Assembly: GCA_020184695.1 (NCBI GenBank)
Contig: JAANOX010000253.1
Span: 248,001-312,000 of the forward strand
DNA: 64,000 nucleotides
Source of the DNA: Histomonas meleagridis 2922-C6/04-290x
Taxonomy: Eukaryota; Protista; Parabasalia
Direction of reading: 5' to 3'
The notes under the pieces: generated by a model
The model's database searches: none
The model's input: the letters and a program-made list of their open reading frames with translations, nothing else
What the model was told of the DNA's origin: nothing
Shown: in pieces, positions 19,992-41,733 of the stretch
Layout of the letters: every line of letters starts with the position of its first letter
Numbering within the stretch: the stretch's first letter is position 1
Translations under genes and position numbers: made by a program

Positions 19992-20175
19992 TTCGAAAAA
20001 GTAATTTTTTTTAAGATTATTTATGCAATTAAATCTTAAATTTTTTTTTCATATTAATAGTTAACTATTCTCAGTGTTATGTTACAAACACATTTGGCTA
20101 AATGCATTGTGCACCTATAGAAAGAAATTCTTTTCCAAAAAAAATTTTTTAGCTAATGGAAGACGTTTAGAATAT

Positions 20176-22611
20176 ATGAAAGATGCTTTTCATCAATTAT
20201 TAACAGCATTTACTTTATCAGACCAGAATGCAATTTGTCAATCAGAGGAAGTAATTAAAGGCAATGCAAAAAATGAAAATTTTGGTCGCTTTTTAATAGA
20301 TTTCATATATGATTCAGATACGCCACCTAATTTTAAATTATTGACATTAATTATTTATGACCGATTTGATGTTGTTCCATTTTCTGATATAATACCTAGA
20401 TTAATTCCAATGCTATCATCTAATTTAGAACAATTTAGATTCTATAGTGCCAAATTAATTGGGAAATTTCTGACCAAAGAAGAAGAAATTCAAAACATAT
20501 TTCAGCTACCACAAGAATATATACAATCCATTTTAATCATAATCACATCATTTTATGATACTCAAAAAAAAGGAATTCTCACGATATCAATGATTCAGTA
20601 CCTTATATCAATCATCAACTCACCATTACCATATAATATTAAAGTTGATGCAGCAATTTGTATGAATCATTGTTTTCCCAAAATTGAAGAAAATCTTGTA
20701 GAAATATTCAGTAATTCCATCCCATTTCAAAATATCTTTACTCAACCAGTTACACCGGAAAATATTTTATTTTTAACCAAATTTTTCCGCTTTTGTTACA
20801 AAACTGTTTCCAAGGCCGATAGCTATCGTATTTGTATTTTTTATCTTTCACAAACATGTGAACATTTATTAAATGATTCATTTCCAGAAATAGATTTACT
20901 ATTTAATTTTATTAGTAAATTAGCATTACGTGTTGAACATTTGCTTGATATTGGATTTAAAGAATTTGATGTTTCCGAATTAGCAAGGATATTAGTATTA
21001 AATTGTATTTTAACAAATCAGCAAATTATTTCATGGAAAAATAATATCGAATTATTTATCAATGATAATTTTGTTGATGATGAATATTGCGATGATGATG
21101 ACAGTGATCATTTACCACAAAAAATTTGTTTAAAAATTTTACAAAAAAATTATTATTTAGTTGATGAAACAATAAACTTTTGTTGTTCGATTGTAAATTT
21201 ATCACCGAAACATCAAGAAGTTGCATTTAATATTATATCCAATATATTACCGAAAGATCATATTTATGATTTATATTTTCCATTAACTTTTCCGGATCCT
21301 ATAATTATTGGTCGATATATGACTTGCACATCAATACTTAATAAAGAAATCGATATTGATTTAATTGAAGGATCATTAAATTCCGATAATTTCATATTAC
21401 CTATTTTTGTAGCTGATGTTATAACTGATACTAAATCTGATAAATATGATAAATATCTTTTACCAACATTTAATAAGTTATGCTCCATGATAACAATGTT
21501 TGAGACTGATTCTCTTCAATATTTTATTAATATTTTAGAACATTTAATAGCTCATAATCCTTTAGAATTTATTAATGTATATCCTGAAATAATACAATTT
21601 TTCTTAAATATAATTCCAACATTTTATGGTTATCCTTCAATTAGAATTGTAATAATTGAGTTAATTACATTATTTATTAAAATTCCTCAAGCAATTATAA
21701 TAATACAACAAATTTGTTTTCCATTTATTTCAATGTTTTTAAATTCTCTTGAGTTATGTGAAAGTGGATTTGATTTGTTGGAAGGTATTCTAATTGGTAA
21801 TGAACCACCGATATTAATTGAAGAAACAAATCAAATATTTAAATCTTTTTATAATATAATAAACGTATATCCATTATTTAGAGAAACTTCAAAATCTGTT
21901 TTTAATCTTGTTGCTTATTTTACAAGAAATATAATCGAATCAAGAATACCATTATTAAAATGGTATATTTTATGTTTAAGTGATGTAAGTATTGATAGTT
22001 CCTTGTTTAATTATATGACAACTGTTGTAATTCATTTCGTACTTAATTGTAATGAAGGAATTGTAAATCTATTAAATTCACTTTATTCAAGAATCCGATT
22101 TTATGAATCGATATCTTATGCAGTTAATTTTGTCGTGACAATATCTTCATTGATTTTATTAAATAAAGAAAAGGCAATAAGTCTTATCGAGGAATCAGGA
22201 ATAGGTTTTAATAACGTTTTAAATCATATTGGTAATGTGAGTAATATAATTGGCGATATGAACTTTTTCGAACAAAAAATTTTATTAGCTGCAATGATGT
22301 CTTTGGGTTCAATTAAAGTTAATTTCGATGATGATGAAAAAATGTTAAGTGAAATAGCAATTGTATATTTAAATTTAATGATTTCTCCATATTTGGGTGA
22401 TGATATAAAAATAGATAATTTCGATGAGTTTTTGTTGTTGAAAGAAGAAAATAATGATGATAACCCAATTAATTCTTTCTTCATAGGTGACCCATTTTAT
22501 TTGGATCATCCATTGAAGAATATGAGCTTTTCGAATTTTGTGAAAATGTTTTTCCCGGTGATACCTGAAATATTACAATATAACTTAAATCGATTGTATA
22601 ATAAAGAATAA
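20176..22611 (+). CDS. Divergent importin-beta-like HEAT-repeat protein
   Basis: Long helical ORF with an importin-like N-terminus and acidic loop (FINDNFVDDEYCDDDDSD); ATG at 20176. Confidence 0.55.
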   Translation: MKDAFHQLLTAFTLSDQNAICQSEEVIKGNAKNENFGRFLIDFIYDSDTPPNFKLLTLIIYDRFDVVPFSDIIPRLIPMLSSNLEQFRFYSAKLIGKFLTKEEEIQNIFQLPQEYIQSILIIITSFYDTQKKGILTISMIQYLISIINSPLPYNIKVDAAICMNHCFPKIEENLVEIFSNSIPFQNIFTQPVTPENILFLTKFFRFCYKTVSKADSYRICIFYLSQTCEHLLNDSFPEIDLLFNFISKLALRVEHLLDIGFKEFDVSELARILVLNCILTNQQIISWKNNIELFINDNFVDDEYCDDDDSDHLPQKICLKILQKNYYLVDETINFCCSIVNLSPKHQEVAFNIISNILPKDHIYDLYFPLTFPDPIIIGRYMTCTSILNKEIDIDLIEGSLNSDNFILPIFVADVITDTKSDKYDKYLLPTFNKLCSMITMFETDSLQYFINILEHLIAHNPLEFINVYPEIIQFFLNIIPTFYGYPSIRIVIIELITLFIKIPQAIIIIQQICFPFISMFLNSLELCESGFDLLEGILIGNEPPILIEETNQIFKSFYNIINVYPLFRETSKSVFNLVAYFTRNIIESRIPLLKWYILCLSDVSIDSSLFNYMTTVVIHFVLNCNEGIVNLLNSLYSRIRFYESISYAVNFVVTISSLILLNKEKAISLIEESGIGFNNVLNHIGNVSNIIGDMNFFEQKILLAAMMSLGSIKVNFDDDEKMLSEIAIVYLNLMISPYLGDDIKIDNFDEFLLLKEENNDDNPINSFFIGDPFYLDHPLKNMSFSNFVKMFFPVIPEILQYNLNRLYNKE

Positions 22612-22761
22612 AAACTCCTGATTTTATTTTTAATATTTTAACTGTTGGTAACGGTTTGATTATTGTGGAAAAAAAATTGACTGAATGACTTTGAATTTTT
22701 TCAATAGAAATCGTGCAAGTTCTAAATAAAGTCATCTGCCAGTTCTTCAGGTTATCTTGGT

Positions 22762-25080
22762 ATGAAATTGTTTTTATTATTTAATTTTATATTTTGCGAA
22801 AATAGGAACACATACAAAGCTGTTAAGCGCTCAATAAATAATCCTGACAAAGATGAATTCTTAATTCCAATACCAAATTTTACAAGTGGAGAATGGGAAT
22901 ATACAGAAACAGTTGAAATAATTTCGGCTACACAAGTTAGAGTACCTCCTGGATTATCAGCTTCCAAATCGATCAGATATACAACAAATTTACAAGATTA
23001 TCCAAACCTTTCTTATCAATATTTTGTAAATAATTGTCCAGCTACAACACAAAATGATTATCCATCCGAAGTTTTATGTTATGTTGACATTTATAATTTC
23101 GAGTCACCTTTGTCAACTGATCCTCAATATGCATTACTAACAGTTTTAGGTCATGAAGAAGAATTTACGTTACCAGGGAAGCCTTACAATATTGGTCGTC
23201 TGACAATATTTTTACAAAATCTTGGCACAGAATCAGTAATTTTTTCACTTCCTGAACTAATGCTTCGAAGTTATATTTATGAACGTGCTGACTATATCGA
23301 AGAAAGTGAAGGAAAGGTTGTTGTTAATATTAAAGAAGGAGATGAATATCAACTTTCGACTCTTTTTTTAGAAAATCCATTTCCACTTCCGCCAAATTCC
23401 ATAAAATATGAATTTCAACTTCCACGTCTGCCAATCATTGCAAACTCGACGCATATTGTTGGCGTTGATATTGAATTTACAAATTTCTTCATTCCATGGG
23501 ATTTTGTAATAGATAATACAGCTAACTTTTTCCTAAATTTAACAGCTCGAAGAGATTTCTCCATCAGTTTTTATGTGCTTGAAGTAGAGACAACATCATA
23601 TTTAGATGCATTAGAGAAATGGCATGATAAGTTTCCTCATATTTATCATCATCAAGAATTTGGTGTTGGTTGTTGGGTATCATTTTATTTTGATAATAAT
23701 CGAGATGATCTTGACACGAATTATTTTGTTAAATTCTTTTGGGGCACATATGTAAAATATAAAAATTATCCAATGTTTGGATATGTTGAACCATCATGTT
23801 ATCATATATCTAATATGAGCATAGGAAATACGCCTGAAATTACTAAGCAAAAATTAGAAGAATGTTTGAATGATGAAACGAATGAAGGACGTGAAAAATG
23901 TTATTTAGCACTTCATTATACTCCACGATATTCAAATGGATCATTTGTTTCATTAAGAAATGAAAAGGAAACTTGGAATGATGGAATATTTGGGAATTTA
24001 CGTATGGAAGAATTTACATATCATTATTATTTCGATCAAGTTTTAGATACTATTATTAAAGATGATACAATTAATGGACTTGGATTAGATTCATTTAATA
24101 TTGATTATGATTCATATCAAGTTGAAAATGAAGATCCTTTTTTATATGTACCTTTTTTATTAAATGATAAAAAGAAAAATAAATATTTACCTTCAATAGT
24201 TGGTTTATTTTGGGCATTAACAAAAGCTGATCAAAACTTATCAACTTATGGTAAAAATTATTTCATGTCAAATACTAATACATTATATCCTCAATATATA
24301 AAATATATACAAATGGGAGGATTCGAAACAGATGTGTTTGAAAATTGGGGTGATCATCAAGCACATAATTTCTTCACTTTAAGATATTGTATGGGTTCAC
24401 GTGCCTTAAGTGTACTTGAAAATACAGATAATTCACGTGCATATACGAGAACAGAAAAATATTTTTCTATTTGTGCTTCACTTGGAATATTCCCTTCATA
24501 TTTTACTGATATTCCTGGAGAAAAACATTTTTGGGAAAGTGAAACTGATCTTGAAGCTAAAAGAGATGATTATAAAAGATGGGGAACTGTTTTAAATTAT
24601 ACTTTAGATCATACATATTATAGAGCTAATCGACTTGGAAGACTTAATTTTGTTGTCGAAACTGTACCTTTCGAAATCTCCAAATTATCAACTGTCAGTA
24701 TGTTTTGTAATAAGGAAAATGAGAAATGTTTTATTTGGGCATTGATAGCAGGAAAAGGAAAAATGGAAATTAATGTAAATGATAAAGTTCCTTTAAGTGA
24801 AGCGAAGTTATTATTTACAGCAAATAATTTGGAGGTGAATATATTGAATAATAATATTACACTTCGTCTAAATGATGTTGAAGATGATGACGCATATAGA
24901 GCTGCATGTGTTGAACTTGATTTTAATATGGAAAATCAGCCATCAATTGATAAAAAAGGTTTAAGTGATGGTGAAATTGCGGGAATTGTAATCGCAGTTG
25001 TTGCTGCAATCGCTATTGCTTGTGTTTTGATTTATGTTTTTGTAATTAGGAAAAAGAATGATAAATCTTCTTCGAATTAA
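22762..25080 (+). CDS. Type I membrane protein (signal peptide, large ectodomain, C-terminal TM)
   Basis: MKLFLLFNFIFC signal; GLSDGEIAGIVIAVVAAIAIACVLIYVFVI TM; aromatic-rich ectodomain. Confidence 0.75.
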   Translation: MKLFLLFNFIFCENRNTYKAVKRSINNPDKDEFLIPIPNFTSGEWEYTETVEIISATQVRVPPGLSASKSIRYTTNLQDYPNLSYQYFVNNCPATTQNDYPSEVLCYVDIYNFESPLSTDPQYALLTVLGHEEEFTLPGKPYNIGRLTIFLQNLGTESVIFSLPELMLRSYIYERADYIEESEGKVVVNIKEGDEYQLSTLFLENPFPLPPNSIKYEFQLPRLPIIANSTHIVGVDIEFTNFFIPWDFVIDNTANFFLNLTARRDFSISFYVLEVETTSYLDALEKWHDKFPHIYHHQEFGVGCWVSFYFDNNRDDLDTNYFVKFFWGTYVKYKNYPMFGYVEPSCYHISNMSIGNTPEITKQKLEECLNDETNEGREKCYLALHYTPRYSNGSFVSLRNEKETWNDGIFGNLRMEEFTYHYYFDQVLDTIIKDDTINGLGLDSFNIDYDSYQVENEDPFLYVPFLLNDKKKNKYLPSIVGLFWALTKADQNLSTYGKNYFMSNTNTLYPQYIKYIQMGGFETDVFENWGDHQAHNFFTLRYCMGSRALSVLENTDNSRAYTRTEKYFSICASLGIFPSYFTDIPGEKHFWESETDLEAKRDDYKRWGTVLNYTLDHTYYRANRLGRLNFVVETVPFEISKLSTVSMFCNKENEKCFIWALIAGKGKMEINVNDKVPLSEAKLLFTANNLEVNILNNNITLRLNDVEDDDAYRAACVELDFNMENQPSIDKKGLSDGEIAGIVIAVVAAIAIACVLIYVFVIRKKNDKSSSN

Positions 25081-25307
25081 TTATATAATATATGCATGAA
25101 TAAATTTGTTATATACGATTTTTATAAATTTATGTTTGGATTGACTAATAAAAATTCTTTATGTAAATTAATCATCTTCATTTATACAAAAAAGAAATGT
25201 TATCAAATGATTTTATTCAGAGCATTGATGTATTATTAAATAAAATACTTCATTGGCTATATAATATATTAATTATATACATAGAGAAGAAACAATAAAC
25301 TTCGAAA

Positions 25308-28300
25308 TTAATTAATATTATTTTCTTCATGTTTAAGAAGTAAATTAACAATTTCTGTATAACCATTTTCAGATGCTCTCATAAGTGCTGTCTTAAATGT
25401 TTTGAATAATTTCCAAATATTATTTTGAAATATTAAATTATTAAAATAAATTTTATATAAAACAAATAAATATTTTTCACATTGATATCAATTCCTTTTT
25501 GTGCAAGAAGTAATTTAACTATTTCTGTACAGCCTTTTTCAGATGCATTAATAAGTGCTGTTTTATATAATTTAAATAATTTCCAAATATTATTTTGAAA
25601 TTAAAAATTATTAAAATAAATTTTATATAAGAAAAATAAATATTTTTAGCATTGATATCAATTCCTTCTTGTTCAAGAAGTAATTTAATTACATCTGTTT
25701 GACAATTCCACGATGCTTCAATCAGTGCTGTATTAAATATTTAAAATGATTATCAAATATTAATTTGAATTTCCGAATATATTTAAAAAATATTAAATAA
25801 AACATATAAATATCTTTATTATTAATATCAATTCCTTTTTGTTCAAGAAGTAATTTAACTATTTCAGTATGACCATTTCTAGATGCAATATTAAGTATTG
25901 TATCAAATAATTTTAATAATTTCCATATATTATTTTGAAATTATAAATTATTAAAATAAATATTATATAAAACTTATAAATATTTTTATCATTAATATCA
26001 ATTCCTTTTTGTTTAAGAAGTAACTTAATGATTTCTGTACAGCCTTTTTCAGATGCCAACATAAATGCTGTCCAAAATAATTTGAAAAATTTCCAAATAT
26101 TATTTTAATATTTTAAAATATTAAAACAATTATAAAACAAAAAAAATAAATATCTTTATTATTGATATCAATTCCTTTTTGTTCAAGAAGTAATTTAACT
26201 ATTCCTATATTACCATTTTTAGATGCAATTATAAGTGCTGTATTAAAAAATAAAAATTATTTTTAAATATTATTTAAAAATATCAAATTAGTAAAATAAA
26301 TTGAAAATAAGAAATATATATATTTTTAGCATTGATATCAATTCCTTTTTGTTCAAGAAGTAATTTAACTATTCCTATATTACCATTTATAGATGCACAA
26401 ATAAGTGCTGTATTAAAAAAATTTGATAATTGTTAAATATTATTTTGATATATTAATTTATGAAAAAAAATATTGAATAAAATGAATAAATATCCTTTGC
26501 ATTAATATCAATTCCTTCTTGTTCAAGAAGTATTTTAACTATTTCTGTATTACTTTTTGAAGATGCATACATAAGTGCTGTTTTAAATAATTTAAACAAT
26601 TTCCGAATATTATTTTGAAATCTCAAATTAGTAAAATAAATTGAAAATAAGAAATATATATATTTTTAGCATTGATATCAATTCCTTTTTGTTCAAGAAG
26701 TAATTTAACTATTCCTATATTACCATTTATAGATGCACAAATAAGTGCTGTATTAAAAAAATTTGATAATTGTTAAATATTATTTTGAAATATAAAATTA
26801 TTAAAATTAATATTAAATAAAACAAATAAATATCTTTAGCATTAATATCAATTCCTTTTTGTTCAAGAAGTAATTTAACTATTTCTGTATTACTTTTTGA
26901 AGATGCATACATAAGTGCTGTTTTAAATAATTTAAATAATTACCGAATATTATTTTGAAATAAGAAAAAATTATAAAAATAAATTTTAAATAGAATAAAT
27001 AAATATCTTTAGCATTAATAACAATTCCTTTTTGTTCAAGAAGTAATTTAACTATATCTGTATTACCTTCTTCAGATGCAAATATAAGAGCTGTAGTAAA
27101 TATTTTAAACATTTTCCAAATATTATTTTGAAATTTTAAATTATTAAAATAAATTTTAAATAAAACAAATAAATATTTTTCACATTGATATCAATTCCTT
27201 TTTGTTCAAGAAGTAATTTAACTATTTCTGTATTACCTTCTTCATATGCAATAATAAGTGCTGTTTGAAATAATTTAAATAATTTCCATATATTATTTTG
27301 AAATATCAGATTATTAAAATAAATTTTAAATAAAACAAATAAATATCTTTAGCATTAATATCAATTCCTTCTTGTTCAAGAAGTAATTTAACAATATCTA
27401 TATGAAATTTTTTAGATGCCAATATAAGTGATGTATCAAGTATTTTAAATAATTACCAAATATTATTTTTAAATATCAAATCATTAAAATGAATTTTAAA
27501 TAAAACAAATAAATATCTTTGGAATTAATATTAATTCCTTTTTGCTCAAGAAGAAATTCAACTATTTCAATAAAGCCTTTTTTGGATGCATTTAAAAGAA
27601 CTTTAAAAATTTTGATAAAACATCAAATATTTTTTAGGATCTTTTAATTATTTTAATAAATATTATTTAAAAATATTAAACCTTTTCATGAATTGAATCA
27701 ATATATCCATTTTTTTTAATGTAATCCAATATTTCTTTGTTACCTGAAAACGTTTTTATAGAATTTAAATTTATTTTTATTCGATTTTTTGTTAAAAAAT
27801 ATTGAAAAAGGAATAAATCACCACTTTCTATTGATTGAATGACAAGTGAATCGCTGATTTTCATACCTTCTTCTACAAAAAAGGAAAGAAGTTCATAATT
27901 ATGAAATAAAACACATTTCTTTCCTAATTCTTCAAAGTTATCAATTTTTCCAATATTATTTTCATAAAGATATCGGAAAAGATCATTTCGATGAAATTCA
28001 ATTGCTGCTTCATATGCATTTTCAAATGTTGATTGATTTTGTTCACATAAATGAATGATTTCTTCGTTTCCACCTGCAACTGCATATTTGCCTGTATTTT
28101 CTATATTAGAATCATTCATGAGTAAATATTTGAAACATTTAACAGAAGTAAAAAATGCTGCATAATCAATTAATGAAACATCTTTTTGATTGATAAATGA
28201 ACATCTTTCATATAATGATGGTTCAATTGTTTGATTAAAATCGAAGTTTGTTTCTGATGATATTTCTTGAAGTTTTTCTATTTCATCATTTCGAATTATA

Positions 28301-28899
28301 TTTGCAATTTCATTTGGATTATGTCCTTCTTCTATTAATTTCTTATGAAGTTCCCAATCATTCTCTGATAATTCGATATATTTTTTAATGATACTGTTCC
28401 ACATTAATATTAAATTATCATTTATAGAGGAATCGAAGTATTTGTTAGTTAATCTATTTATTTCACAATCTGACATACGGTGAATAAAATATGGAGTTTT
28501 TATGTTTTTACAAATACTGAAATCAAAAAAGTTATTTTCGATCATTTTTTCTATAAGATAATATGATTCTTGCGTTTTTTTATATAATAAATATTTTATA
28601 AACATTTTTATTACGTTGTTGTTCTTTTTAAAAATTTCATTTTCTTTCTTTTCAAGTTCTTGTAAATATTTAATATATATTTTATGATGTAAACATTTTG
28701 TCTTAAAATGCATATATAAAATACTACAAATAATAAAATTAGATGAATGTGAAAATTCTTCATTAAAATATTTTAAAGACAATTCAACTGTTTCATTAAT
28801 GTTATCTTCATTCAAATCAAAAATAACCTTTTTAATGTGTTGTAATATTTGAAGGTTTTGTGCGTATTTCTTTTTAGTGCCACTTTGGTTTGATCCCAT
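25308..28899 (-). CDS. DUF3447/ankyrin-repeat gene A, interrupted by 14 non-canonical spacers
   Basis: N-terminal part 28899-27682 (YAAFFTSVKCFKYL, YAVAGGNEEIIHLCEQ) followed by 14 stop-free ankyrin modules (TAL..AS..G.TEIVKLLLEQKGIDINAKD), each preceded by an 80/83-nt spacer. Final module ends ...KHEENNIN-TAA at 25310-25308. About 865-880 aa if spacers are removed. Confidence 0.8.
25392..27681 (-). repeat. 170-nt tandem array: 90-nt ankyrin module plus 80-nt spacer (14 spacers)
   Basis: Spacers at 27602-27681, 27435-27514, 27265-27344, 27095-27174, 26922-27004 (83 nt), 26752-26831, 26582-26661, 26412-26491, 26242-26321, 26072-26151, 25902-25981, 25732-25811, 25562-25641, 25392-25471. Confidence 0.93.
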
Positions 28900-29202
28900 T
28901 AGTCAGATTTGACTAAAAAAAGTGACATGTGGCCAAGAGATTCGAATCTCTTCACATATTCCACATTAAATTCAAGGTAATTTTTCCTTGATAATATTTT
29001 GAATTGATTTTTTAAAGACATTTAAAATATATTAGACAATTAAATAATTTTGTATTTTGTTACTATGTAAATCAACAAATTTTGAGCTTTAAAAAAGTGG
29101 CACTTTGAGGTACCCCATGGCAATAAGGAACCGTTTATTAATATGGTTTGTAGAATACGTTAAAATCGCTTTTGAGAACGTTTATTTAAATCTGAAAGAA
29201 AG

Positions 29203-30042
29203 ATGTCCATAATCGACTCTCGCCCTGGTCCGCACTTTTTTTCAATGCCATTACATAACTATAAAGGGAAAATTCCATTTATTATTACAAACTTGATTAA
29301 CAGACTCGAAGAAAGAAATGCAGATCAACAAGAAGGGATATTTCGGTTAAGTGGACGAAAATCAGAAGTTGATAGGATATGCACTTTCATGGATAGGGCG
29401 CCTGTTACGGATTGGACCCAATTTGAAGACATGGATAATAATGTTATCGCCTGCGCACTTAAAAAATACCTACAAAATTTATCAAGTTTCGATCCCCTTA
29501 TTGGCAAAGACATCTCTGATGAGGTCAATTCTACTATTCAATTGTTTTCTGAAGATCCAACAATATATTCTCGACTTAAAAACCTTCTTGAGCACTCCCC
29601 TCTCACCCGACGAAATGCTCTTGCCTATGTTATGCATTATCTTAAAAAAATTGCCGATAACTCCGGGGTTAATAACATGAATTCTTATAATTTATCTGTT
29701 TGTTTTACACTAGCAATTTTCCCACAGACAGACACAATTGCTAGCGGTAACTCCATGAAAGCGTTTGAGCTCTTTATCAATGATTTTGAACAAATTTTTG
29801 ATCCATCTTGGTATGATGCAGCAAACATACTAACACCAGGTGATATCGAAAAACTCTCTGCGCCAATCATTGATATCAGTGACGCCAAGAATGAACAGAT
29901 GAGAAGAATGGTAAAAAAGTCATCTTTGATACCATATGATCGATCGATGCTTAGTACATTTTTCTTAATAGAACGACCAAATAGGCCACCACCGTCACCG
30001 CCACATTCACCGTCACAATCTCCCGCAGTAATACCGGAATAA
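29203..30042 (+). CDS. RhoGAP-domain protein
   Basis: QEGIFRLSG arginine finger, IACALKKYL, NNMNSYNLSVCF; Pro-rich tail. Confidence 0.93.
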   Translation: MSIIDSRPGPHFFSMPLHNYKGKIPFIITNLINRLEERNADQQEGIFRLSGRKSEVDRICTFMDRAPVTDWTQFEDMDNNVIACALKKYLQNLSSFDPLIGKDISDEVNSTIQLFSEDPTIYSRLKNLLEHSPLTRRNALAYVMHYLKKIADNSGVNNMNSYNLSVCFTLAIFPQTDTIASGNSMKAFELFINDFEQIFDPSWYDAANILTPGDIEKLSAPIIDISDAKNEQMRRMVKKSSLIPYDRSMLSTFFLIERPNRPPPSPPHSPSQSPAVIPE

Positions 30043-30206
30043 ACGCTATGTTTTATTAAATGTGATTTCAAATACACATAATTTGTAAAATAAAATTGGA
30101 TAAAGGCTTTCAAATTGTTGATTCTTAAATATTCTTTTAGAGAAAATAAGAAAAAGAAAAAAGTTCTTGCTGAAATGAAATACAAGAAAAATAACGTATT
30201 TTACAA

Positions 30207-30938
30207 ATGCCACCAAAAAGAGTTATAAAAGTGGTGCGCAAAAAAACACCAGTTGAACGAACACCCCGTATCCCTACAAAGCAAAAAGTAATTATATTAC
30301 GACGCGTAAAAGATGGTGAAGAATATGTTCATAGAGAAGAGATTCCTGCATCAATAGGACTACCAGAATATTACTCAGAAATGGAAGAAGCTAACAAAGA
30401 AATAAATGAACAAACAGAAAGATTTGATGGGAAAACAATTATTTTTTTAATTGGCGAACCAGGAAGTGGTAAAAGAACACAATCAGAAAAAATTGTCAAT
30501 GAATATAATATGGGCTACATTGATGCAGCTGAGCTGCTTCATTATGATTCAGAAGATCAAGAATCTGAAGAAACATATGTAAATATATTAAAGGAAGAAA
30601 TCATTTCTCAAAACAAAAACTCTTACGTCATTAGCGGATTTCCTATGAACATTGAACAAGCAGAAGAATTTGAAAAAATTGTTTGTGATATTACATTTGT
30701 TATATTTCTTGATGTTCCAACCGAATTTCTTTTTGAAAGCCTCTTAAAGCAAGACCCTGAATTTGCAGAAAAAAGTGAGTATGATGAAATTCGACTTGAG
30801 ATCCAATCACTTCATGAGGAATTAGAACAAGTTTTCGATCATTTCAACTCACTTGGGAAAGCTGCAAAAATTGATGGAAATCGAGAACCTGACGAAGTTT
30901 TTAGAAATATCCAAAATTTTATTCAAGAAATTGTATAA
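30207..30938 (+). CDS. Adenylate/UMP-CMP kinase-like protein (divergent)
   Basis: IFLIGEPGSGKRTQSEKI P-loop, YVISGFP, IDGNREPDEVF. Confidence 0.8.
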   Translation: MPPKRVIKVVRKKTPVERTPRIPTKQKVIILRRVKDGEEYVHREEIPASIGLPEYYSEMEEANKEINEQTERFDGKTIIFLIGEPGSGKRTQSEKIVNEYNMGYIDAAELLHYDSEDQESEETYVNILKEEIISQNKNSYVISGFPMNIEQAEEFEKIVCDITFVIFLDVPTEFLFESLLKQDPEFAEKSEYDEIRLEIQSLHEELEQVFDHFNSLGKAAKIDGNREPDEVFRNIQNFIQEIV

Positions 30939-31076
30939 ATTATTAGAAGCTATTCACGATATAAATAAAATTATTTATTATTTTATCATTTCCACAATTC
31001 TTTAATGAAATTTTTTTTTAATAACATTCATATAAATTATATTTATCTCAAATTAATAAAATATGTTATATCTTTA

Positions 31077-32501
31077 TTATTGTTCTTTATAATAATTCTC
31101 TTTTATACGATCAACTGTTTCAACAAAGTTTGGATTAAACCCAACTTCATCTAAAAAGTTAATAACGCTATTACCAAAGAAATATGTTTCCCTATAATTG
31201 AACGAGCACTTTTTCAATAAACATTTGAATGTTTGAATTGCCTTTTCAATTGTTATCTCTTGCGAAGACAACAAAATATCAATAAATAGATCCCAAAACT
31301 GATTTGGGAACAAATTTCCGAGTTGTGCAGGATCAAGCCCATCCAAAATATGCAAAAACAAATAAGCGCAATGCTCATGTATGCTATTTGATTTCTCGAT
31401 ATTATCGAAAGTCATTTTTATGATATTTAAAACATGATCAACAGGAAAATTCGGTGGCAAAGCACCAAAAGCATCAATGTAATATGTTAAAAGTAGTAAT
31501 AATGATTCAAATGTTTTATCATCCATATTAGGATTAGATAACATTTGAATAATGAATGGTAAATCAATTTTACTAATTAATATTCTTTTATATTCAGTTA
31601 TTTCGGATAAAAGTAATTCCGTTATTATATCAAGTGATCGATAATTACAATAGTTATAAAGAGAATCCAAAATTTCATCAATTATTCCATATTTAAATAT
31701 TTTTTCTTCGATAATTTTTGGCTTTTCCCAAAAAATTCTTTTAAGTGTTTGTGAAGAAATATTTATAATTGTTTCATCGTTAAGTTTATAAAGTTGTTTT
31801 ATTAATGTTAATAATCTTTTTTGACTTAAAATTTCTTTTTTGAATCCAATTTGTATATAACTGGTATAAATTGTCAAAAGATCTTTAATTGTTCTTATAA
31901 ATGTATCTACATCATCTTGTGACTGAATTTCATTCATACGAAGTAAATAATAATTAAGATAATTTAATGAAAGTTCAATAATTGGCGAATTAAGAATGAA
32001 TTCGCGCATTTGGGGAAAGGTTGAAAGCATCCATATAAAATGATATGTATTATAAGAAAGTAATATATATTGGCTTTCTCCTTGAAGCAGTGGATTTGAT
32101 AGGATTTGATGCAAAATTTGAAGATATTCTGGTGGAAATTTCATCAGAACAGAATCTTTATAGTGAATAATTAAACGTGATAGAGTACCTATAGACTTGA
32201 CTTTAACAGGAATACTTCTCAATATTATTAATTGAAAGAGAAAAGTTATCAAATCTGAATCAAATGAATTTATAAATTCATATGTTGGTATTTGTCCTTT
32301 ATCGAATTCTATATTAATATTGCATAGAGAGTCATATAATGCTTGCTCATTTTGTTTAGAATTTGTAAGAGTATCAATTAGAAACACCCATTTATGATGA
32401 CATTGTTCTTGTTCCTCAATAGATTCCTCAGCTAATGCAATGTCTTCGTGTAATGTTTTTTTCTTTTTTTTATTTATTGTCTTTGCTTTAAAATTTAACA
32501 T
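31077..32501 (-). CDS. Hypothetical helical-repeat protein
   Basis: 474-aa Leu/Ile-rich ORF; no specific family recognised. Confidence 0.65.
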   Translation of the reverse strand: MLNFKAKTINKKKKKTLHEDIALAEESIEEQEQCHHKWVFLIDTLTNSKQNEQALYDSLCNINIEFDKGQIPTYEFINSFDSDLITFLFQLIILRSIPVKVKSIGTLSRLIIHYKDSVLMKFPPEYLQILHQILSNPLLQGESQYILLSYNTYHFIWMLSTFPQMREFILNSPIIELSLNYLNYYLLRMNEIQSQDDVDTFIRTIKDLLTIYTSYIQIGFKKEILSQKRLLTLIKQLYKLNDETIINISSQTLKRIFWEKPKIIEEKIFKYGIIDEILDSLYNYCNYRSLDIITELLLSEITEYKRILISKIDLPFIIQMLSNPNMDDKTFESLLLLLTYYIDAFGALPPNFPVDHVLNIIKMTFDNIEKSNSIHEHCAYLFLHILDGLDPAQLGNLFPNQFWDLFIDILLSSQEITIEKAIQTFKCLLKKCSFNYRETYFFGNSVINFLDEVGFNPNFVETVDRIKENYYKEQ

Positions 32502-32946
32502 TTACCAAAGATTTTGGCCGCCGAATTTGGGGTGCACCAGTACAATCATGTATGGAATAAACGGCTTCCTTTTCTTTCTTTTCGTCACAAAAAAAAATTC
32601 AACATTTTAACTTTAACATTATTTGATAAAAAAGAAACCAAAATATTCTACTATGATAAAAATATTTCAATATTTTAAGAATTTCGAAAAAAATCAATAA
32701 ATTTGAGATTTCAAATTTTTTAAAAATAAAACACAAAATTATATTTATTAATGTACCTCTGTAGCATCAAAAAAATTGGCTTGTTTTTATTAAGGATAAT
32801 GTTCATTTTTTGAGAGTTACATTTTTTTCGCTTACATTACTCTTAACACACAAATGAACATCCGAACTATGACAATTTTAACATTTTTTTTTAATGATTT
32901 TAAATTTTATTAAGGAAAACATTTAAAATTTTTACTTACATAACAA

Positions 32947-34947
32947 TCAGTAATTATTGCCGAACTTATCGAATTCCTTATCCTCATAGTAGTCATCATT
33001 TTCGTTGTACACCTGCACCTTTCCCATTGATTTCCTTCTCCACAAACCAATGATTGGTGTTAATATTCCTCCTATTACGAAGAATATCACGCCCATTAAC
33101 CAATAAGCCATTCCGTCAGTGAAGTGTACGCATAAACCATTTTTTATTGGTGAGTAAATACATTTAAATTCGGTACATTTGATAGAGTTAAATCCATCAT
33201 TGACAATAACTTTAGCCTTATCTATTAATTCATTACCTATTCCAACAACTTTATTTTTGGTTGTATCAATAGTAACTATAACATCATTGACATAATTTGT
33301 TACAACTTTCATTTTCTCACCAGTTTTAGTTAAGTCTTCATCATGTTTATCAATCGATTTATCTAAATTATTAAGTTGTATAAGTGTTTCTTCATCATCT
33401 TTATATTTAATACGTAATTTATCAGTGTTTTCTTCATGTTGAAATATAATGTTATTACTTGTGAAAACTTTACTCCAAATATTACCTTCACTAAAATTAC
33501 GTAATTGTTGTAACGTATGTGAAAATGTACTTAAGTCAAAGGCATCAGTCATTTGTATGACAACTTCATCAAGTCCATTTAATACTGATTGATAATCAAA
33601 TAATCGTTCAAGGCCCATTTCGAAAATTGGTCTTTCGACTTCGCATACTAACATTGAAGTAAAATTATTACTTGGAATTCCAGTTGCATTACCTGCAATG
33701 TTACCTAATGTTACATCTAATGATTGACAATTATCATTTAAGACAAAGAATAATAACCCAAATATTGCACCGGGTATAACAATAAAGATATCTAATAATA
33801 TCCCAATTAATGAAAATCGTCCCATTATACATCGTGAAAAACAATTGTTACAAAAGAAAAAGATGAAAAATATGATCGAAAATAATATAATGAAAATGGT
33901 GGCAACAATTGAAACTAATGAGATATATGGCTTAGCAATATGAATATAGTGGACAAATGTGCTCACATAGCCTTGTAACGTCGAATTGATGTCATAAATT
34001 CCATTTATTTCAGATGAAATACTTTTTTCATATTTCGATATCTCATTTTGGGCTGATTGAATATTGTCAGTAATGGTCGTTTGCGCTTCTTTAGAGATCT
34101 TCGTAAGGTCCCCGGCATTGTCAGTGAGTTTACGTGTGATTTCTTTGATGCCTGGTGCTGTTACGGTTAAACTTGTATCAATAAAATTAAGATCAGAAAT
34201 ACTTTGCTTTTTTTCGAAGTAGCCGCGGACTGCTTTGTAATCTGGCTCAATTGTGGGAGAGTTTGACTTGAAATAATTGGTATAAGTATCAAGATAATCA
34301 CTGACGGCAGATGCCACATTGGAAACTGTGGATGCTTGAATAAGTATGTTGACAAGAGTGCTTAAGTTTTTGTCAATTTGTACTAATGAATAATTTATGA
34401 GATTAAAACTATTGTCGGAAATTGAATTTGCGGCATTGGCAACGGTTTCAATGGTATTCGAAATGTGCGTAGGCTCTGAAGTAAACTCGTTAAGACCTTT
34501 GAGGATGGAAACAACAGCTATAAATGTTAAAATTGCAGAAACAATTAGTAAAACAACAGAAATTAAAAGAAAGAAAACTTGCATACATGTTTGCTTTTTG
34601 CTGTTTTTTGGCCTACAGCAACAACATGATACACAATTCAGAATAATGTAGTATAGAAGCATTAATACAAAAAGTACAAGAAGTACAACTGCAAAACCAG
34701 CTTTTCCATACAAATATGGCATGAGATCATCAGAGTTGAAATTTGATAAGTCAATCGAGTCAACTGTGGGAAAACCTATAATTCTTGCAATTGATAATGA
34801 AGGTGTACCGATTTTTATTATTGAATCTTGGAGAGGACCCGGTGTTGCAAACGAACATCTTTCCTCACTTCGAGCATTGCTCCAAAAGAGGAACAGAAAG
34901 CTACAAAAAAGCATTGAACGCACGTTACGTAAACTTTTGTTTAACAC
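32947..34947 (-). CDS. Prominin-like five-TM glycoprotein
   Basis: Signal peptide, TM1, Cys-rich loop (CVSCCCCRP), TM2, large loop, TM3, CNNCFSRC, TM4, large loop, C..IY.PI..GLC...W, TM5; this is prominin topology. Confidence 0.7.
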   Translation of the reverse strand: MLNKSLRNVRSMLFCSFLFLFWSNARSEERCSFATPGPLQDSIIKIGTPSLSIARIIGFPTVDSIDLSNFNSDDLMPYLYGKAGFAVVLLVLFVLMLLYYIILNCVSCCCCRPKNSKKQTCMQVFFLLISVVLLIVSAILTFIAVVSILKGLNEFTSEPTHISNTIETVANAANSISDNSFNLINYSLVQIDKNLSTLVNILIQASTVSNVASAVSDYLDTYTNYFKSNSPTIEPDYKAVRGYFEKKQSISDLNFIDTSLTVTAPGIKEITRKLTDNAGDLTKISKEAQTTITDNIQSAQNEISKYEKSISSEINGIYDINSTLQGYVSTFVHYIHIAKPYISLVSIVATIFIILFSIIFFIFFFCNNCFSRCIMGRFSLIGILLDIFIVIPGAIFGLLFFVLNDNCQSLDVTLGNIAGNATGIPSNNFTSMLVCEVERPIFEMGLERLFDYQSVLNGLDEVVIQMTDAFDLSTFSHTLQQLRNFSEGNIWSKVFTSNNIIFQHEENTDKLRIKYKDDEETLIQLNNLDKSIDKHDEDLTKTGEKMKVVTNYVNDVIVTIDTTKNKVVGIGNELIDKAKVIVNDGFNSIKCTEFKCIYSPIKNGLCVHFTDGMAYWLMGVIFFVIGGILTPIIGLWRRKSMGKVQVYNENDDYYEDKEFDKFGNNY

Positions 34948-35398
34948 TTACGTTCTATCAAAAACTTGATCCTCAGCCAATTTATTTGGTGACAGAAAAT
35001 TTTCAAAAGTATTATATAGTTTACATGAACATAAAAAATTCAAAAAGCTGTTTGTTAAATTTTCGGTGAAAAGTTTCTAACTTGTTTTATTTCTTGTCTA
35101 CCAAAAAAAATTGATATCAAAACTGTAGAAATTGTTATTAAGTATGCTTTAATTGTTGATTTCAAAATAAAAATTAAATATAAGATAATTGAAAAGAAAA
35201 AAATAAAATTTTATCCGAATGGTTAATATCAAATATTTCTTTATAAAACTTATATCATAACATTTATTATGCTGATTATAAATTTTGCATTTAAATAAAA
35301 ATTAATCCTTTCGATTGATAGGTTAATCACACATTTTAATTGTTATTTTGGGGCACCCTTTGACTAAATTATAATTAATTTTCACTTTTCCTCAGACA

Positions 35399-38300
35399 AT
35401 GGGAACAAACCAAGAACAATCTGAAATTAATTATATACAATCAATTCACCAAATCATATTTAATCTAGAAAATGAAAATATTGAATCATCAGTCCAAACA
35501 ACAATGCAATACTTTGATCAATCAACCCCGATATCATTTAATTATATCATATGTCATTGCATTTACTCATCTTTTGTGTCCCAAATCAAGGATACAATGA
35601 TATATATTAATTATTTAAAAGCACTTGAAACAAAAGAGGAACATATTTTAAATAAAAATCCACAAATTTTTAATATTTTTGAGCAATATTTAAAGACCAA
35701 AAATATATATACTGGAGAATCAAATTATCTTCTTGCAGAACTTAAAGAAGCCGGATTAATAAAAATGGATTTTTTTATTCATGGATATGATATGAATTTA
35801 TTTAAAATTCTTAAGGAGAAAAACTTTGAAGAAGCAAAAAGATATATTAACAAAAAATATTCAAATAATAATCGAAACTTTATAGAAATCCCATCAGATA
35901 TATCTATTATAATTCAAAATGATGATGTGGAAAAGCTCCAAGAAATTGCATCACAACCAAACTTTGATTATAATCAAAATATCAAACAATATGTATATGA
36001 GAAAGGAATTGTTAATGATGGAAATACTTCATTAATTAATTATAGTGCATTTTATGGATCAATCAAATGTTTCAAATTTTTAATGTTAAATGGTAGTAAT
36101 TTAACAGATGTAGGGAAATATGCAGTTGCAGGAGGAAATATAGAAATGGTTCATCTTTGTGAAAAAAATATCATAAAAATTAAAGAATTATTTGAAGTAG
36201 CAATAGAATTCACTCGAAATGATATCTTTCATTATCTATATGATAAAAATCCAGAAGAGATAAATGAAAATAACTTAAATGATTTATGTATAATATGTAT
36301 TCAATCTGATAATTATGAAATTTTCTCATTTTTGATTGAAAAAGGACTTAAAATTAATAATAAAGTTATCTCAGCAATAATCACATGTGGAAATTTATAT
36401 ATATTAAAGTATGCTATAAAAGGAAAAGAATTCCCGAAAGAATCTTTAATAAATTCCGTCATTTCCAAAAATATAGAACTTGTTGAATATATTCTAAAAC
36501 AAAATGTGATTGATATTAATGAGAAAGATATATATTTATTTTATATGAGATTTATTTTAATAATTTTATATTTCAAAATAATATTTGGAAATTATTTTAA
36601 ATATTTCAAACAGCACTTATGATAGCATCTCAAAAAGGTGATATAGAAATAGTTCAATTACTTCTTGAACAAGAAGGAATTGATATTAATGCTAAAGATA
36701 TTTAATTGTTTTATTTAAAATTTATTTTAATAATTTAATATTTCAAAATAATATTTGGAATTTATTCAAAATATATTACACAGCACTTATAAGATCATCT
36801 GAAAATAATAATATAGAAATAGTTAAATTGCTTCTTGAACAAAAAGGTATCGATATCAATGCTAAAGAAGTTTATTTAATATATAAGGTGTTTATTTTAG
36901 TGTTATCTAATATCAATATAATATTTGGGATTTTTTAATATTGTATAGAACAGCTTTAATCTTTGCAGTAACAAAAGGTATCGAACTTGTTAAATTACTT
37001 ATTAATAAAGGAATCGATATTAATGCTGTGGATATTTATTTATTTTATAATTAATTTTTTTAGATAATATAATATTTCCTTAAAATATTTCATGTTTTTT
37101 CATTATAATTCAAACAGCTATATCAGTATCTTTATCAACAAATCAAATCAACGTATTTAAATTACTTCTTGAGCAAAAAGGAATAAATCTAAATGATAAA
37201 AACGCTTATTTTATTTATTTAAAGTCTATTTAACAAATATTCAATTTCAATATAATATTTGGAAATTGCTTTAATTTTTTCAAACAATACTAATGGATGC
37301 TTTATCTCATATTAAAATTAATAAGACTGAATTTAATAAAAAAGAAATTGTTAAATTGCTTCTTAAAAATAAAGGAATTGATGTCAACATTAAAGATTTT
37401 TATTGTTTTTAATTAATGTTTATTTCATTGTTATAATAATTGAAAATATTTTTTGGAATATATAAAAATTAATTCATACAGCTCTTTATTATGGAATGGG
37501 AGCTACAAATGAAAAAATTGAAATCTTTAAGGAATTTCTTGAAAGTAATAAATTTGATATATATGCTAAAGATAATGTTTATATCAATAATTTGATATTT
37601 CATATTAATATTTGGATATTTTAACTAATATATGAAACACCATTTATGTATGCATCAAGAAATGGTTATACGGAAATAGTTAAGTTACTTCTTGAAAATG
37701 CGAAAATTGATTTAAATGAAAAAGATATTTCTTGAATTCACATAATGATTTTATAAATAATTTAAAATTTCTTCATAAAATATGGTTTTCATTCAAATGA
37801 TTTAAAACAGCACTTATTTTAGCATGTGAATATGGCAAAACGGAAATGGTCAAATTACTTCTTGAACAAGAAGGAATTGATATCAATGCACAAGATATTT
37901 TTTTATTTTATTTAAATATATTTTTATTAATTTGAATTTTATTTATAAAATATGGAATTTATACAAATAATTTAAAACAGTTTTAATGTATGCAACATTT
38001 TGTAAAAAAGAAATAGTAACATTACTTCTTAAACAAGAAGGAATTGATATTAATGCTAAAGATGTAAATTTATTTTGTTTAATGTATATTTTAATAATTT
38101 AATGATTTAAAATATTATATGGAAATCATTAAAAATATTTGAAACAGCACTAATGTATGCATTTCAAGATGATAAATTCAGAATGATTATATTTTCAAGT
38201 GATGTTAAAAAACTACGTATCGAAATATTACAATTACTCCTTCAACAAAAAGATATTGATGTAAATGCTAAAGATATTTTTTTATTAAATTTAAAATTTA

Positions 38301-38616
38301 TATTAATAATTTTCTGTTTTAATATATTATTTGGTAATTATTTAAATGATTTCAAACAGCACTTATCAAAGCATCTAAAATTGGAAAAAAAGATGTTGTT
38401 AAAATTCTTCTAAAACAAAAAGGAATTGATATTAACGCACAAGACAATCAAGAAATGACTGCAATATTAAGGGCTTCCGAATATAATAAAAATGATGTGG
38501 TTAAACTTCTTAAAAGACAAAAGGGAATTAAATACAATGAAGATAAACTTAATGAAGTTCGCAAGGTAAATCCAATGAACTATGGATTTGGCTTTGGTTT
38601 TAATAAAGGCTTTTAA
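35399..38616 (+). CDS. DUF3447/ankyrin-repeat gene B, interrupted by 11 non-canonical spacers
   Basis: N-terminal part 35399-36529 is paralogous to gene A (MGTNQ vs MGSNQ; YSAFYGSIKCFKFL; YAVAGGN). Then 11 stop-free ankyrin modules; the last contains an uninterrupted repeat (INAQD-NQEM-TAIL) and ends ...GFNKGF-TAA at 38616. About 817-828 aa if spacers are removed. Confidence 0.8.
36530..38355 (+). repeat. Ankyrin module plus spacer array (11 spacers)
   Basis: Spacers at 36530-36609, 36700-36779, 36870-36949, 37034-37113, 37204-37283, 37398-37477, 37574-37636 (63 nt), 37727-37806, 37897-37976, 38064-38143, 38276-38355. Confidence 0.92.
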
Positions 38617-39131
38617 AAACAATAATTTTACAAAACTTTTCCTATTATATAATAAATAAAATTAAATTTCAATTTCATGAATAATAGCTTTACTGAAAAC
38701 CAATTAGGTTTCGAAAGCTATAGACAATATTTTCTTTAAATACATATTAAAAACAAACAAACAACAGTTAAAATTACATTAAACAAATTGAGTATTTAAC
38801 CAATTTTGAAAACCATTAATTGGTAAAACTTGATAACTTTGCATGAAAGCTTCTTCCCTAGCTAAAAGAAATTGTATTTAAAAAATTTAAATCAAAAAAA
38901 TAATAATGAAACAAATATTGATTAATAATTTTTTCTGAACAATTTTTTTTACTTTGTTAAATACAGAAGCTGTAAAAAGCTAATAAATTAGCGAAAAGAA
39001 ATTTAATCCAAAAGTAATTAACTATTGGGAAAATGTAATTTTTGGATTTTTTGAATTATCGGGAAAGTTTTGAATATAAAAGTGACGAAATTGGATAAAA
39101 CGGTCTCCAAAAATAATTCATCGTTTTGCCA

Positions 39132-39707
39132 ATGACTAAAATGACCCAGGTGAAGGTCGTCATTGTAGGAGATACAAAAGTAGGGAAAAGTTGTATACTT
39201 AGCAAATACGTTCAGGGTACATTTGATAAGAATTTACCAGCGACAGTCGGCGCAGCTCTTCTTACAAAAGTTATCCAGACACCAAATGGATCAGTTCGCC
39301 TTCAACTATGGGACACAGCTGGCCAAGAAAAGTTCAGAGCACTTTCTCCTATGTACTACCGATCAGCAGATGTTGCAGTTCTAGTTTATGATATAACATC
39401 AAAATCAACTCTGGAAGCTCTGGAAGATTGGTCAGCTGAAATTGCAGATAAAGCCCCGCCCAATATTAAATTAGTTGTTATAGGAAATAAGAATGATTTA
39501 GAAAAAGAAAGATGCATATCATTTCAACAAGGAAAAGAAATTGCCAATCAACTCGGCGCAACTATATACGGTGAAACGTCTGCAGTGACAGGTGATGGCA
39601 TTAATGAAATCTTTGGTAAAATTGCTCAATTAGATTTTACCCAAGATATCGTTATTCAAACCCAAACGCCAGTTACTAGACCAGAAGAGGGCAACAAGTG
39701 CTGTTAA
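39132..39707 (+). CDS. Rab-family small GTPase (Rab5/21-like)
   Basis: GDTKVGKS, WDTAGQEKF, MYYRSAD, GNKND, ETSA, C-terminal CC; first ATG at 39132. Confidence 0.95.
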   Translation: MTKMTQVKVVIVGDTKVGKSCILSKYVQGTFDKNLPATVGAALLTKVIQTPNGSVRLQLWDTAGQEKFRALSPMYYRSADVAVLVYDITSKSTLEALEDWSAEIADKAPPNIKLVVIGNKNDLEKERCISFQQGKEIANQLGATIYGETSAVTGDGINEIFGKIAQLDFTQDIVIQTQTPVTRPEEGNKCC

Positions 39708-39832
39708 ATGTTTCTCACTTCAAACGCCAAAATTTTCAGAATGAAAAACAGATTCTAAACTGTCATTAAACAAAATATCAAATTTTTGATTGTTTTTCTT
39801 GATTTATTGTTCACTGTTTTTTTAATGGACGT

Positions 39833-41733
39833 AAAGTTTCACAAGGAACTTTGTTGTGACAGCCCTGCCAACGAATTGTCTGATAAGGAAAGTGACAGTT
39901 GATTAAAACAATAATAATCATTCACAACTTGATATTTCGGAGAACAAAACAGAAATTTTATTGAACAAATTTATTTTTTGATGGCATTAAACCATTAAAA
40001 ATCATTTTAAAAAATAATATTTTTGATTAAATATTTTTGATTAAATATTTTTTATTTATTTTTTATTTTTTATTTTCTCGTGTTGTTTTACATGGACCTG
40101 TCCATTCAGTTTCAAAGAATAAGAATTCTTTATTATCATCAATTTCTTCATTCCGATTAACAATTGTTGGTGGAACTTTATCTGCCAACCAAAGTGATGT
40201 TTTCCCAATTTTATGGAATGGGATATTAGACATAATTTTTTTGGGAACTTATCCATCATCGTAGTAATATTAACATCTGTAATTTGTGCCAATTCATTAA
40301 ATCCTTGAACAATTATCGCTGCCACAAAGTATGCTAACCACGTTTGCGGACATGGCGAACAATTTAATTGTAACCAAACTGACCAAATGTCACTAAATGA
40401 TCGTTTAAATAATAAAACAAAATCGGAATAACACCATAAAAGTTCTTTAAGTGAATTACGTCGCATCCAAATAGCTGCAAGTGGTGATACTTTACAAATA
40501 ATTTGAAAAATAGTTTCTGCTTGTTTTTTACATTGTTCTGTAACATTAGCTAATAATTTAAAAATGCTAATAATATTGGAACAAATAAATCATTCATACC
40601 TTGAAGATATCCAATCGGTGGATTAAATATACAATATGTACGTAATAGTTGTGTAACCATTTTAAGTCCTTCTGCATCATTATCTTTAAATGCTAATAAT
40701 TGGCGATCGGTACGACTAACATCATGTTTAATAACTCGAAATGCAGATGAAATTCGTTTATTATTATTAATTTGATCGGGTGTAAGTTTTTCAACTTGAT
40801 TAACTAATTGTTTATATTCTTTACTTAATTCTTTATCAAGTTTTTCTCGTTCAATAGTAGTACTATTAGATGGATAAACTCCAAATGCAAATGGTAATGC
40901 TTTATTTAATATTTCAGTATCAATACCTGCATGAAATAAACGTAATTTAAATTCTTCAAAATTTTTAATTCGTCCTTCTTCATCAAATAAATTACCCCAT
41001 TCTTCACTCGTAATTTTTTGATATTCTTGCCCAATATGATCTGAATATTCATCAATTTCTTCTAAAATTCGTTTATGATTAGCTCGTGCTGCTTCAGCTA
41101 ATGGAAATTGTGGATCTCGTGGTAATGTATCACTATTATCTAAATGAATAATTAACGTTAAAAAGAAACTATGTAAACAATCCCAAAATTTTTTAAGATC
41201 TTCTGGAAAATTTTTTGTAGAAGGTTCTGATGAAGTATCAAAACCTAATTGAATATGTGGTGGTGTATATGGATAAACTCCTCGATGACATCGTTTATAA
41301 AATTGTAATGAATATGATTTATCTGCTGATGGAACTGCAATACCATTAATTAAAAGTTGTTCAACTAACTCTGTAACTGAGATAAATTCCATCGGTTCAT
41401 ATGAAAATCGTCGTTCTTCACCTTCATTATATCCATAAATTGTTAATGAAAAATCTTCATGAAGTTGTAAAAGTTTAATATGAACACACTCTTGTTTAAA
41501 ACTTTTGTTAAATTCCCATGATTCTTCTGATTCTGTATTTTGTGTTTGTTGCATAACTGCTAAATGATGCATAGGTGAACCACTAATGGGTGTCCAACTA
41601 ATCATAAAAATTTCATCAAAACGTGATAAAACTAACGTACCATTAGATCCTCCTGTTTGTCCATTGGTTTTATCAATGGTTGGTTCAATAGTACAAAGTT
41701 GAAATCGCCTTGCTCCACCTGCAAAAGTCATCT
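39833..41733 (-). repeat. Left arm of ~1.9-kb inverted duplication
   Basis: Reverse complement of 43591-45413; identity ends at AAAGTTTC (39833) and at -2 from the ATG (41733). Confidence 0.95.
40056..41731 (-). pseudogene. TBC-domain Rab-GAP (TBC1D15/17-like), copy 1, disrupted
   Basis: IKHDVSRTDR and GYLQGMNDL TBC motifs; 393-aa ORF ends at a ~121-nt deletion (40550-40560); +2 A in a homopolymer near 40236-40242. Confidence 0.85.

Follow-up and report, generated by a model that had tools for sequence, protein, structure and literature searches.

Proposed arrays of 17-nucleotide introns and single-codon exons in two ankyrin genes of Histomonas meleagridis

Two paralogous ankyrin genes of the parabasalid Histomonas meleagridis are broken repeatedly by short, T-rich spacers, which raises the question of what becomes of the spacers in the message and, if they are removed, which of their bases stay. 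The genes, referred to here as A and B, lie in a stretch of 64,000 nucleotides (nt) from strain 2922-C6/04-290x (assembly GCA_020184695.1, contig JAANOX010000253.1, positions 248,001 to 312,000 of the forward strand); this whole stretch is called the window, and all positions below are counted from its first letter. We think it probable that each of the 25 spacers is made up of four, rarely three, introns of 17 nt, which interrupt the ankyrin beta-turn at one codon boundary after the next. Downstream of the Asp codon that precedes the turn, the probable order would be unit 1, a codon, unit 2, a codon, unit 3, a Gly codon, unit 4 and a last codon, followed by Thr-Ala-Leu. Gene A would hold 56 such introns and gene B 43.

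Two ankyrin genes with regular spacers

Gene A (25308–28899, minus strand) and gene B (35399–38616, plus strand) are convergent paralogues, and neither is called in either NCBI record (public assembly) of Histomonas meleagridis. Both begin with an N-terminal DUF3447/ankyrin part, about 400 amino acids (aa) in gene A and 377 aa in gene B, with an array of 170-nt period downstream of it. Pfam assigns DUF3447 to the N-terminal open reading frame (ORF) of gene A and Ank_2, Ank_4 and DUF3447 to gene B; the uninterrupted part matches Ank_2, Ank_4, Ank_3 and Ank. The repeats have the features of ankyrin, namely 33–34 residues, a T-A-L..A..G start, a helix pair and a D-x-x-G-x turn, and they are regular in the spliced model. 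The second published strain is identical to the window base for base over 20207–40000, and because the same sequence stands in two independent assemblies, the spacers are real DNA.

There are 14 spacers in gene A and 11 in gene B. In 23 of the 25 the length is exactly 80 nt; the others measure 83 nt (27004–26922, gene A) and 63 nt (37574–37636, gene B). Excluding the 80-nt spacer at 27681, the remaining 22 of that length align without a single gap at a mean identity of 83%. The gene A array runs from 27681 down to 25392 on the minus strand, with spacers starting at 27681, 27514, 27344, 27174, 27004, 26831, 26661, 26491, 26321, 26151, 25981, 25811, 25641 and 25471, each of the form 4 × (17 + 3) nt except that at 27004, where the second micro-exon would be 6 nt long, that is, one codon more. 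The first of these (27681–27602) links the N-terminal domain to the array and is the least consensus-like copy in the gene: three of its four units begin with G (GT, GA, GT), and Asp takes the place of the Gly of the others.

Within a spacer the sequence is periodic, with four blocks of 20 nt that each consist of a T-rich 17-nt unit and 3 nt; Tandem Repeats Finder also reports 20-nt periods within spacers. A search with the spacer motif at up to three mismatches returned 11 occurrences, against 0 expected, all of them inside genes A and B. The last repeat of gene B provides an internal control, since there the linker is uninterrupted: AAT CAA GAA ATG at 38446–38457 (plus strand) is read in a continuous frame, D-NQEM-T, and its four codons equal the spliced linkers in length. 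A single origin in an ancestral repeat is probable for the arrays, which would then have spread through 170-nt tandem duplication and gene duplication.

In the initial annotation of this sequence, attention was drawn to a 12-nt core at spacer nt 52–63 which, in the upstream frame, reads x-[FY]-G-x (IFGN, IYGN, KYGF, LFGN, FFGI and others). Our count agrees: the third codon of this core is GGN in 19 of 25 spacers, and the substitutes are N, N, K, D, D and H. The variation within the core had been described as codon-like, which holds for the Gly codon (entropies of about 0.8, 0.7 and 1.5 bits at its three positions) and fails for the rest, as the F/Y codon varies at its second base (TTT/TAT) and the flanking x codons have no excess at third positions.

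Transcript contigs and the bases that remain

The evidence on removal comes from contigs of four sequencing runs of 2023, which together hold about 0.6 of the sampled words of gene B. The contigs agree with gene B without a single mismatch for stretches of up to 1230 nt, and every spacer that they reach is jumped. Five gene B spacers are bridged on both sides, with a net loss of 68 nt at each, such that 12 nt remain between the Asp and the Thr codon; 7–10 letters between the flanks are placed on neither side. Further contigs give one-sided ends. The proposal that each spacer loses 68 nt and keeps 12 is thus borne out at all five bridged junctions. The removal of a 17-nt segment 3' of the Gly codon is supported as well, the Gly codon itself being kept. 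Because the contigs lose 68 nt and keep 12, a single removal of 71 nt, which the initial annotation had held out as the alternative, is ruled out together with translational bypass and dead genes.

The 12 nt kept are, however, most likely not the contiguous core. Keeping nt 52–63 predicts none of the ten observed junction ends: the downstream exon starts 3 nt before ACA, and the first kept bases differ from those of the core. Under plain match extension, no single contiguous micro-exon taken from the spacer fits all junctions. A single intron with GT-AG, AT-AC or TA-TA ends was rejected too: such ends arise in no register, and unplaced letters stand between the contig flanks. Most likely the bases kept are the triplets at nt 18–20, 38–40, 58–60 and 78–80, a choice that rests on contig-end coordinates, periodicity and sequence statistics; three of the four would then be single-codon micro-exons. 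Under plain match extension and without any special assumption, these four codons reproduce nine of the ten observed contig ends.

The individual junctions illustrate the fit. At the first spacer of gene B (36530–36609; all gene B spacers are on the plus strand) the contig leaves the genome at 36529, carries 9 unplaced letters and resumes at 36607, as predicted if GAG TAT GGA CAA is kept (D-E-Y-G-Q-T). At the fourth (37034–37113), where the kept codons would be TTA AAT CAT CAA and His replaces Gly, the ends are 37033 and 37110 with 8 letters, the extra T being the predicted one from CAT. The sixth (37398–37477; AAT AAT GGA CAT, D-N-N-G-H-T) gives 37397, 9 letters and 37475 in three runs, again as predicted. 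At the eleventh (38276–38355; AAA TCT GGT CAA, D-K-S-G-Q-T) the ends are 38276 and 38352 with 7 letters; the overhang of one base at either end, an A on the left and a T on the right, is the one that AAA and GGT would give. An extra T at 37803 is likewise accounted for by CAT or GGT. The 63-nt spacer (37574–37636) lacks unit 1, so that AAT adjoins the upstream exon, and in three runs the left contig piece stops at 37577, after AAT and the G of GAT. This end fits the four-codon model and refutes models in which TTT-GGA is kept next.

Both spliced and retained forms were seen at the third spacer (36870–36949; predicted kept codons GGT CTA GGG AGA). A spliced contig resumes there at 36947; another, from run X4, reads straight through the unspliced sequence between 36885 and 37033 and is then spliced at each of the three spacers that follow. 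In run X1 the read depth falls more than 20-fold in the intergenic stretch 39052–39185, as expected for RNA. The contigs thus look like RNA processing with some retention.

The spacer sequences point to the same triplets. Stop codons occur in 0 of the 96 kept triplets, against 8.3 expected (P about 2e-4). Mean entropy is 1.23 bits in the kept triplets and 0.66 bits in the units, T content 0.20 and 0.58, and G content 0.22 and 0.03. The kept codons are the most divergent sites of the repeat (identity 0.52 vs 0.76–0.88). Deletion of all 17-nt units turns the genes into single ORFs of 879 aa (gene A) and 828 aa (gene B) with natural stops. The predicted linkers are canonical x-x-G-x ankyrin turns, for example D-E-Y-G-Q-T, D-K-N-G-Y-T, D-N-N-G-E-T, D-K-D-G-Q-T and D-K-N-G-K-T; those of gene A include KDGD, KDGQ, KKGT, NYNN, SEGK and KNGK. 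Similar linkers (K-N-R-K, R-N-G-K, K-K-G-R, E-S-G-N) stand in the abundant family transcripts listed. Most likely the F/Y codon belongs to unit 3, as its ATTT 3' end, and is intronic, and of the F/Y-G core the Gly codon alone is coding. The further claim that F/Y and both x codons are coding is in conflict with the four-codon model, which places them in introns and predicts D-K-N-G-K-T rather than D-I-F-G-N-T.

The units themselves follow the pattern R-T-T-T ... A-T-T-T. In the pooled logo, position 1 is A (80%) or G (16%), positions 2–4 are T, position 14 is A (86%) and positions 15–17 are T; the start reads R-T-T-T-[AC] with almost no C. The first two bases of the 96 units are AT in 58, AA in 19, GT in 11 and others in 8; the last two are TT in 70, AT in 18 and AG in none. 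No TA-bounded ends occur in the units, and the U12-type motifs (/RTATCCTT and TCCTTRAY) are absent from the unit logo. The trichomonad ACTAAC-ACACAG 3' motif has no match in genes A and B, and its matches in the window are at chance level. RNAalifold found 0 conserved pairs over 22 spacer copies, single-copy spacer folds had z-scores of -0.5 to +1.5, and no Rfam family was found in the window. With no conserved helix at the cut sites, structure-guided splicing of the bulge-helix-bulge or Ire1 type was set aside. A mobile element such as an introner or a miniature inverted-repeat transposable element was rejected as well, the motif being confined to the two ankyrin genes with no excess elsewhere; a position-weight-matrix scan combined with an open-frame test gave 10 matches outside genes A and B, against 9 for a decoy length of the same frame.

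Between genes A and B, identity is 0.77 in the units and 0.76 at exon third positions. The units thus diverge like synonymous sites with length alone held, and we rejected an additional constraint on their sequence. No indels occur in the 22 aligned spacers despite unit divergence at the third-position rate. Since no base has been gained or lost there while the sequence diverges, it can be deduced that unit length is under selection.

Weighing other readings

Several points weigh against the four-codon reading as it stands. At the fifth spacer (37204–37283) one junction is a base off: the contig shows 37203, 10 letters and 37282, where 9 letters and 37281 are predicted, which would fit a cut of unit 4 one base further 3', still at 17 nt. 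The runs are labelled as RNA by guess alone. The transcript contigs cover gene B, and the introns of gene A are predicted from its sequence. The 7–10 junction letters are known by number; their probable split into three 3-nt exons is argued from sequence statistics and contig ends, and the second kept codon is placed by periodicity, statistics and the junction at 37577 instead of by letters read. The units have neither GT-AG ends nor a branch-site motif, and we know of no precedent for a 3-nt exon between 17-nt introns. The spliced proteins were found in neither protein library; for the N-terminal part of gene B there was no match above 52% identity among length-matched clusters and none above 58% among representatives. 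Finally, if the joints were left-normalised, four of the five junctions would also fit the removal of 51 and 17 nt around an 8-nt micro-exon, and this is the sole uniform two-intron layout for which that is so.

This last layout is the idea of the initial annotation with its register moved by 3 nt: nt 53–60 would be kept as an 8–9-nt micro-exon and the exon would resume at nt 78, giving D-I-F-G-Q-T. In its favour, the F/Y-G core is the best-conserved part of the spacer. However, plain match extension was visibly applied to paralogue contigs in the output that contains these junctions, and under that rule the layout gives wrong left ends at 36530, 37034, 37398 and 38276. It also leaves unexplained the 20-nt periodicity and the stop-free, hypervariable nt 18–20 and 38–40, and it could not keep the frame in a two-unit repeat found in a paralogue described below. 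An I-F-G linker occurs in none of the abundant family transcripts listed, and we consider the layout unlikely. Equally unlikely, in our estimate, are three introns of 17, 34 and 17 nt, with nt 18–20, the F/Y-G hexamer (nt 55–60) and nt 78–80 kept (D-K-F-G-K-T). Such introns would retain F/Y-G, and at all 80-nt spacers their predicted contig ends equal those of the four-codon model. They part at the 63-nt spacer, where a left end at 37576 would be expected and three runs show 37577. Moreover, nt 54–57 (ATTT) have their homologues in the 3' ends of the remaining three units, and nt 38–40, which this layout would discard, share high G content, low T content and hypervariability with the other kept codons.

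The joined form could also derive from a spacer-free second DNA copy, from DNA elimination or from an artefact of sequencing or assembly, since the runs were guessed to be RNA and the contigs come without strand or molecule information. We regard this as very improbable. The contig flanks match the gene B locus with 0 mismatches over more than 1 kb, four runs agree, both DNA assemblies contain the spacers, and the removed blocks have no flanking microhomology that might explain template switching. The depth drop of run X1 and the run X4 contig, with one spacer retained and the following three spliced out, also speak against it. Least probable of all, and hardly to be entertained, is that the spacers stay in the messenger RNA (mRNA) and are bypassed by the ribosome, or that the genes are decaying pseudogenes. 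The absence of GT-AG ends would suit such a reading, but the spacers are absent from the transcript contigs, all 25 are of frame-restoring length, and the exons are open over 828 and 879 codons.

Relatives, meaning and known systems

Related spacers occur beyond genes A and B. In a paralogue of H. meleagridis (WSYJ01000138.1, here L006), the units start with GTTT and are 17–19 nt long, and the repeat mentioned above has two of them: GAT AAT ATG [17] GGA [17] TCT ACA. In the same paralogue (7560–8130), the reading frame of the annotated 'caskin' P0010 enters the first spacer of the ankyrin array of that gene and ends there; the annotated C-terminus is therefore probably an artefact, and the real gene probably continues for ~600 nt. 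Two further examples are gut metagenome contigs from ENA. One of them, L001, comes from a distant gut relative (about 40% protein identity) and keeps the full 80-nt layout. In the other, L002, a spacer lacks exactly unit 1, as does the spacer at 37574, so units have been gained or lost independently. The called proteins P0001–P0009 of these gut trichomonads end inside spacers of the same family, and the spacer element is therefore not confined to Histomonas.

Outside the two ankyrin genes, the window holds other features. A 776-aa ORF with leucine-rich repeats of BspA type (16445–18775, plus strand) and an 845-aa ORF without Pfam matches (20074–22611, plus strand) both sit where the NCBI record lists no gene, so the omissions of the published annotation seem to go beyond the ankyrin genes. 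At 9345–11429 (plus strand) there is a gene for M3 oligopeptidase A, with a Histomonas paralogue at 81% and Tritrichomonas foetus at 53%. Since its nearest proteins beyond the parabasalids are those of Verrucomicrobiota (about 49% identity, full length), the sequence suggests that the gene was acquired from bacteria long ago. Compared position by position, the two strains disagree from 40001 on, at a 14-nt tandem repeat (40016–40056, 2.9 copies), which looks like a candidate indel.

Parabasalids are textbook examples of intron-poor eukaryotes. The Histomonas genome has been reported to contain 573–638 introns, with at most one per gene (PMC8529796). Genes A and B alone would add 99 to that number. 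If the four-codon reading is true, no shorter introns would be known from the phylum, where the minimum so far is 23 nt. To our knowledge, they would also be the first intron family with T-T at its 3' end and the first case of single-codon exons in arrays. They would open to direct test how little information suffices to define an intron, and what selects a 3' site in the absence of AG. Gene finders that demand GT-AG miss an expressed protein family in a poultry pathogen and in its gut relatives known from metagenomes. Our full-text searches of the literature found no description of these spacers.

As to mechanism, the units might be removed one at a time, each recognised by intron definition; a 3-nt exon would then not need to be recognised by itself, because single units are what is removed. 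The 3' cut could be set by distance and not by AG, as suggested by the constant length, by the shifted cut at 37204 that still measures 17 nt, and by the absence of AG. Whether this would be a strongly derived spliceosomal reaction or a different cut-and-join activity we consider about equally likely. A more far-reaching proposal, which we hold as doubtful though conceivable, is that the units are a new class of intervening sequence, removed by a length-measuring process without GU or AG and possibly without the spliceosome, and that the turn codons stand in exons of their own in order to vary the ligand-contacting tip of the repeat. Such variation could work via alternative removal codon by codon or via unit-guided exchange of single codons.

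Among known systems, U12-type introns (AT-AC or GT-AG) have A or G as their first base, a 3' site chosen largely by distance, and relaxed terminal dinucleotides, but they need /RTATCCTT as well as a branch site of the form TCCTTRAY, and their length far exceeds 17 nt. The Histomonas units share the A or G at the first base and lack both motifs. The 3-nt micro-exons known from animals and plants occur singly, flanked by long GT-AG introns, and require enhancer proteins. As in those cases a one-codon exon would be included in the mRNA, whereas in Histomonas there would be three in a row, 17 nt apart, in every repeat.

From the same phylum come the type B short spliceosomal introns of the trichomonads Trichomonas vaginalis and T. 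stableri. They measure 23–28 nt, begin with GT and end with AG, carry a (T)CTAAC branch site that is fused to ACACAG, and number at most 1–2 per gene (PMC12316389). They are likewise very short and T-rich with a narrow length distribution, the distance of their 3' site from a signal inside the intron is constant, and some occur in genes for repeat proteins, ankyrin included. The Histomonas units differ in being 17 nt long, with A/G-T...T-T ends, no motif, and 43–56 per gene. Introns of similarly small size are those of the ciliate Stentor, at 15 nt, and of the Bigelowiella nucleomorph, at 18 nt (cited in PMC12316389). The likeness lies in the near-minimal size and the sharply fixed length, from which recognition by intron definition would follow. 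Stentor and Bigelowiella introns keep GT-AG ends and are separated by ordinary exons, not by single codons.

A short AT-rich block that breaks a reading frame without a splice consensus is also known from translational bypass and from the TA-bounded internal eliminated sequences of ciliates. The bypass gap of phage T4 gene 60 stays in the mRNA, and the ciliate sequences are missing from the somatic DNA. In contrast to both, the Histomonas block is absent from the transcript, as seen in the 68-nt loss, and present in the DNA of both assemblies, which is what is found for an intron.

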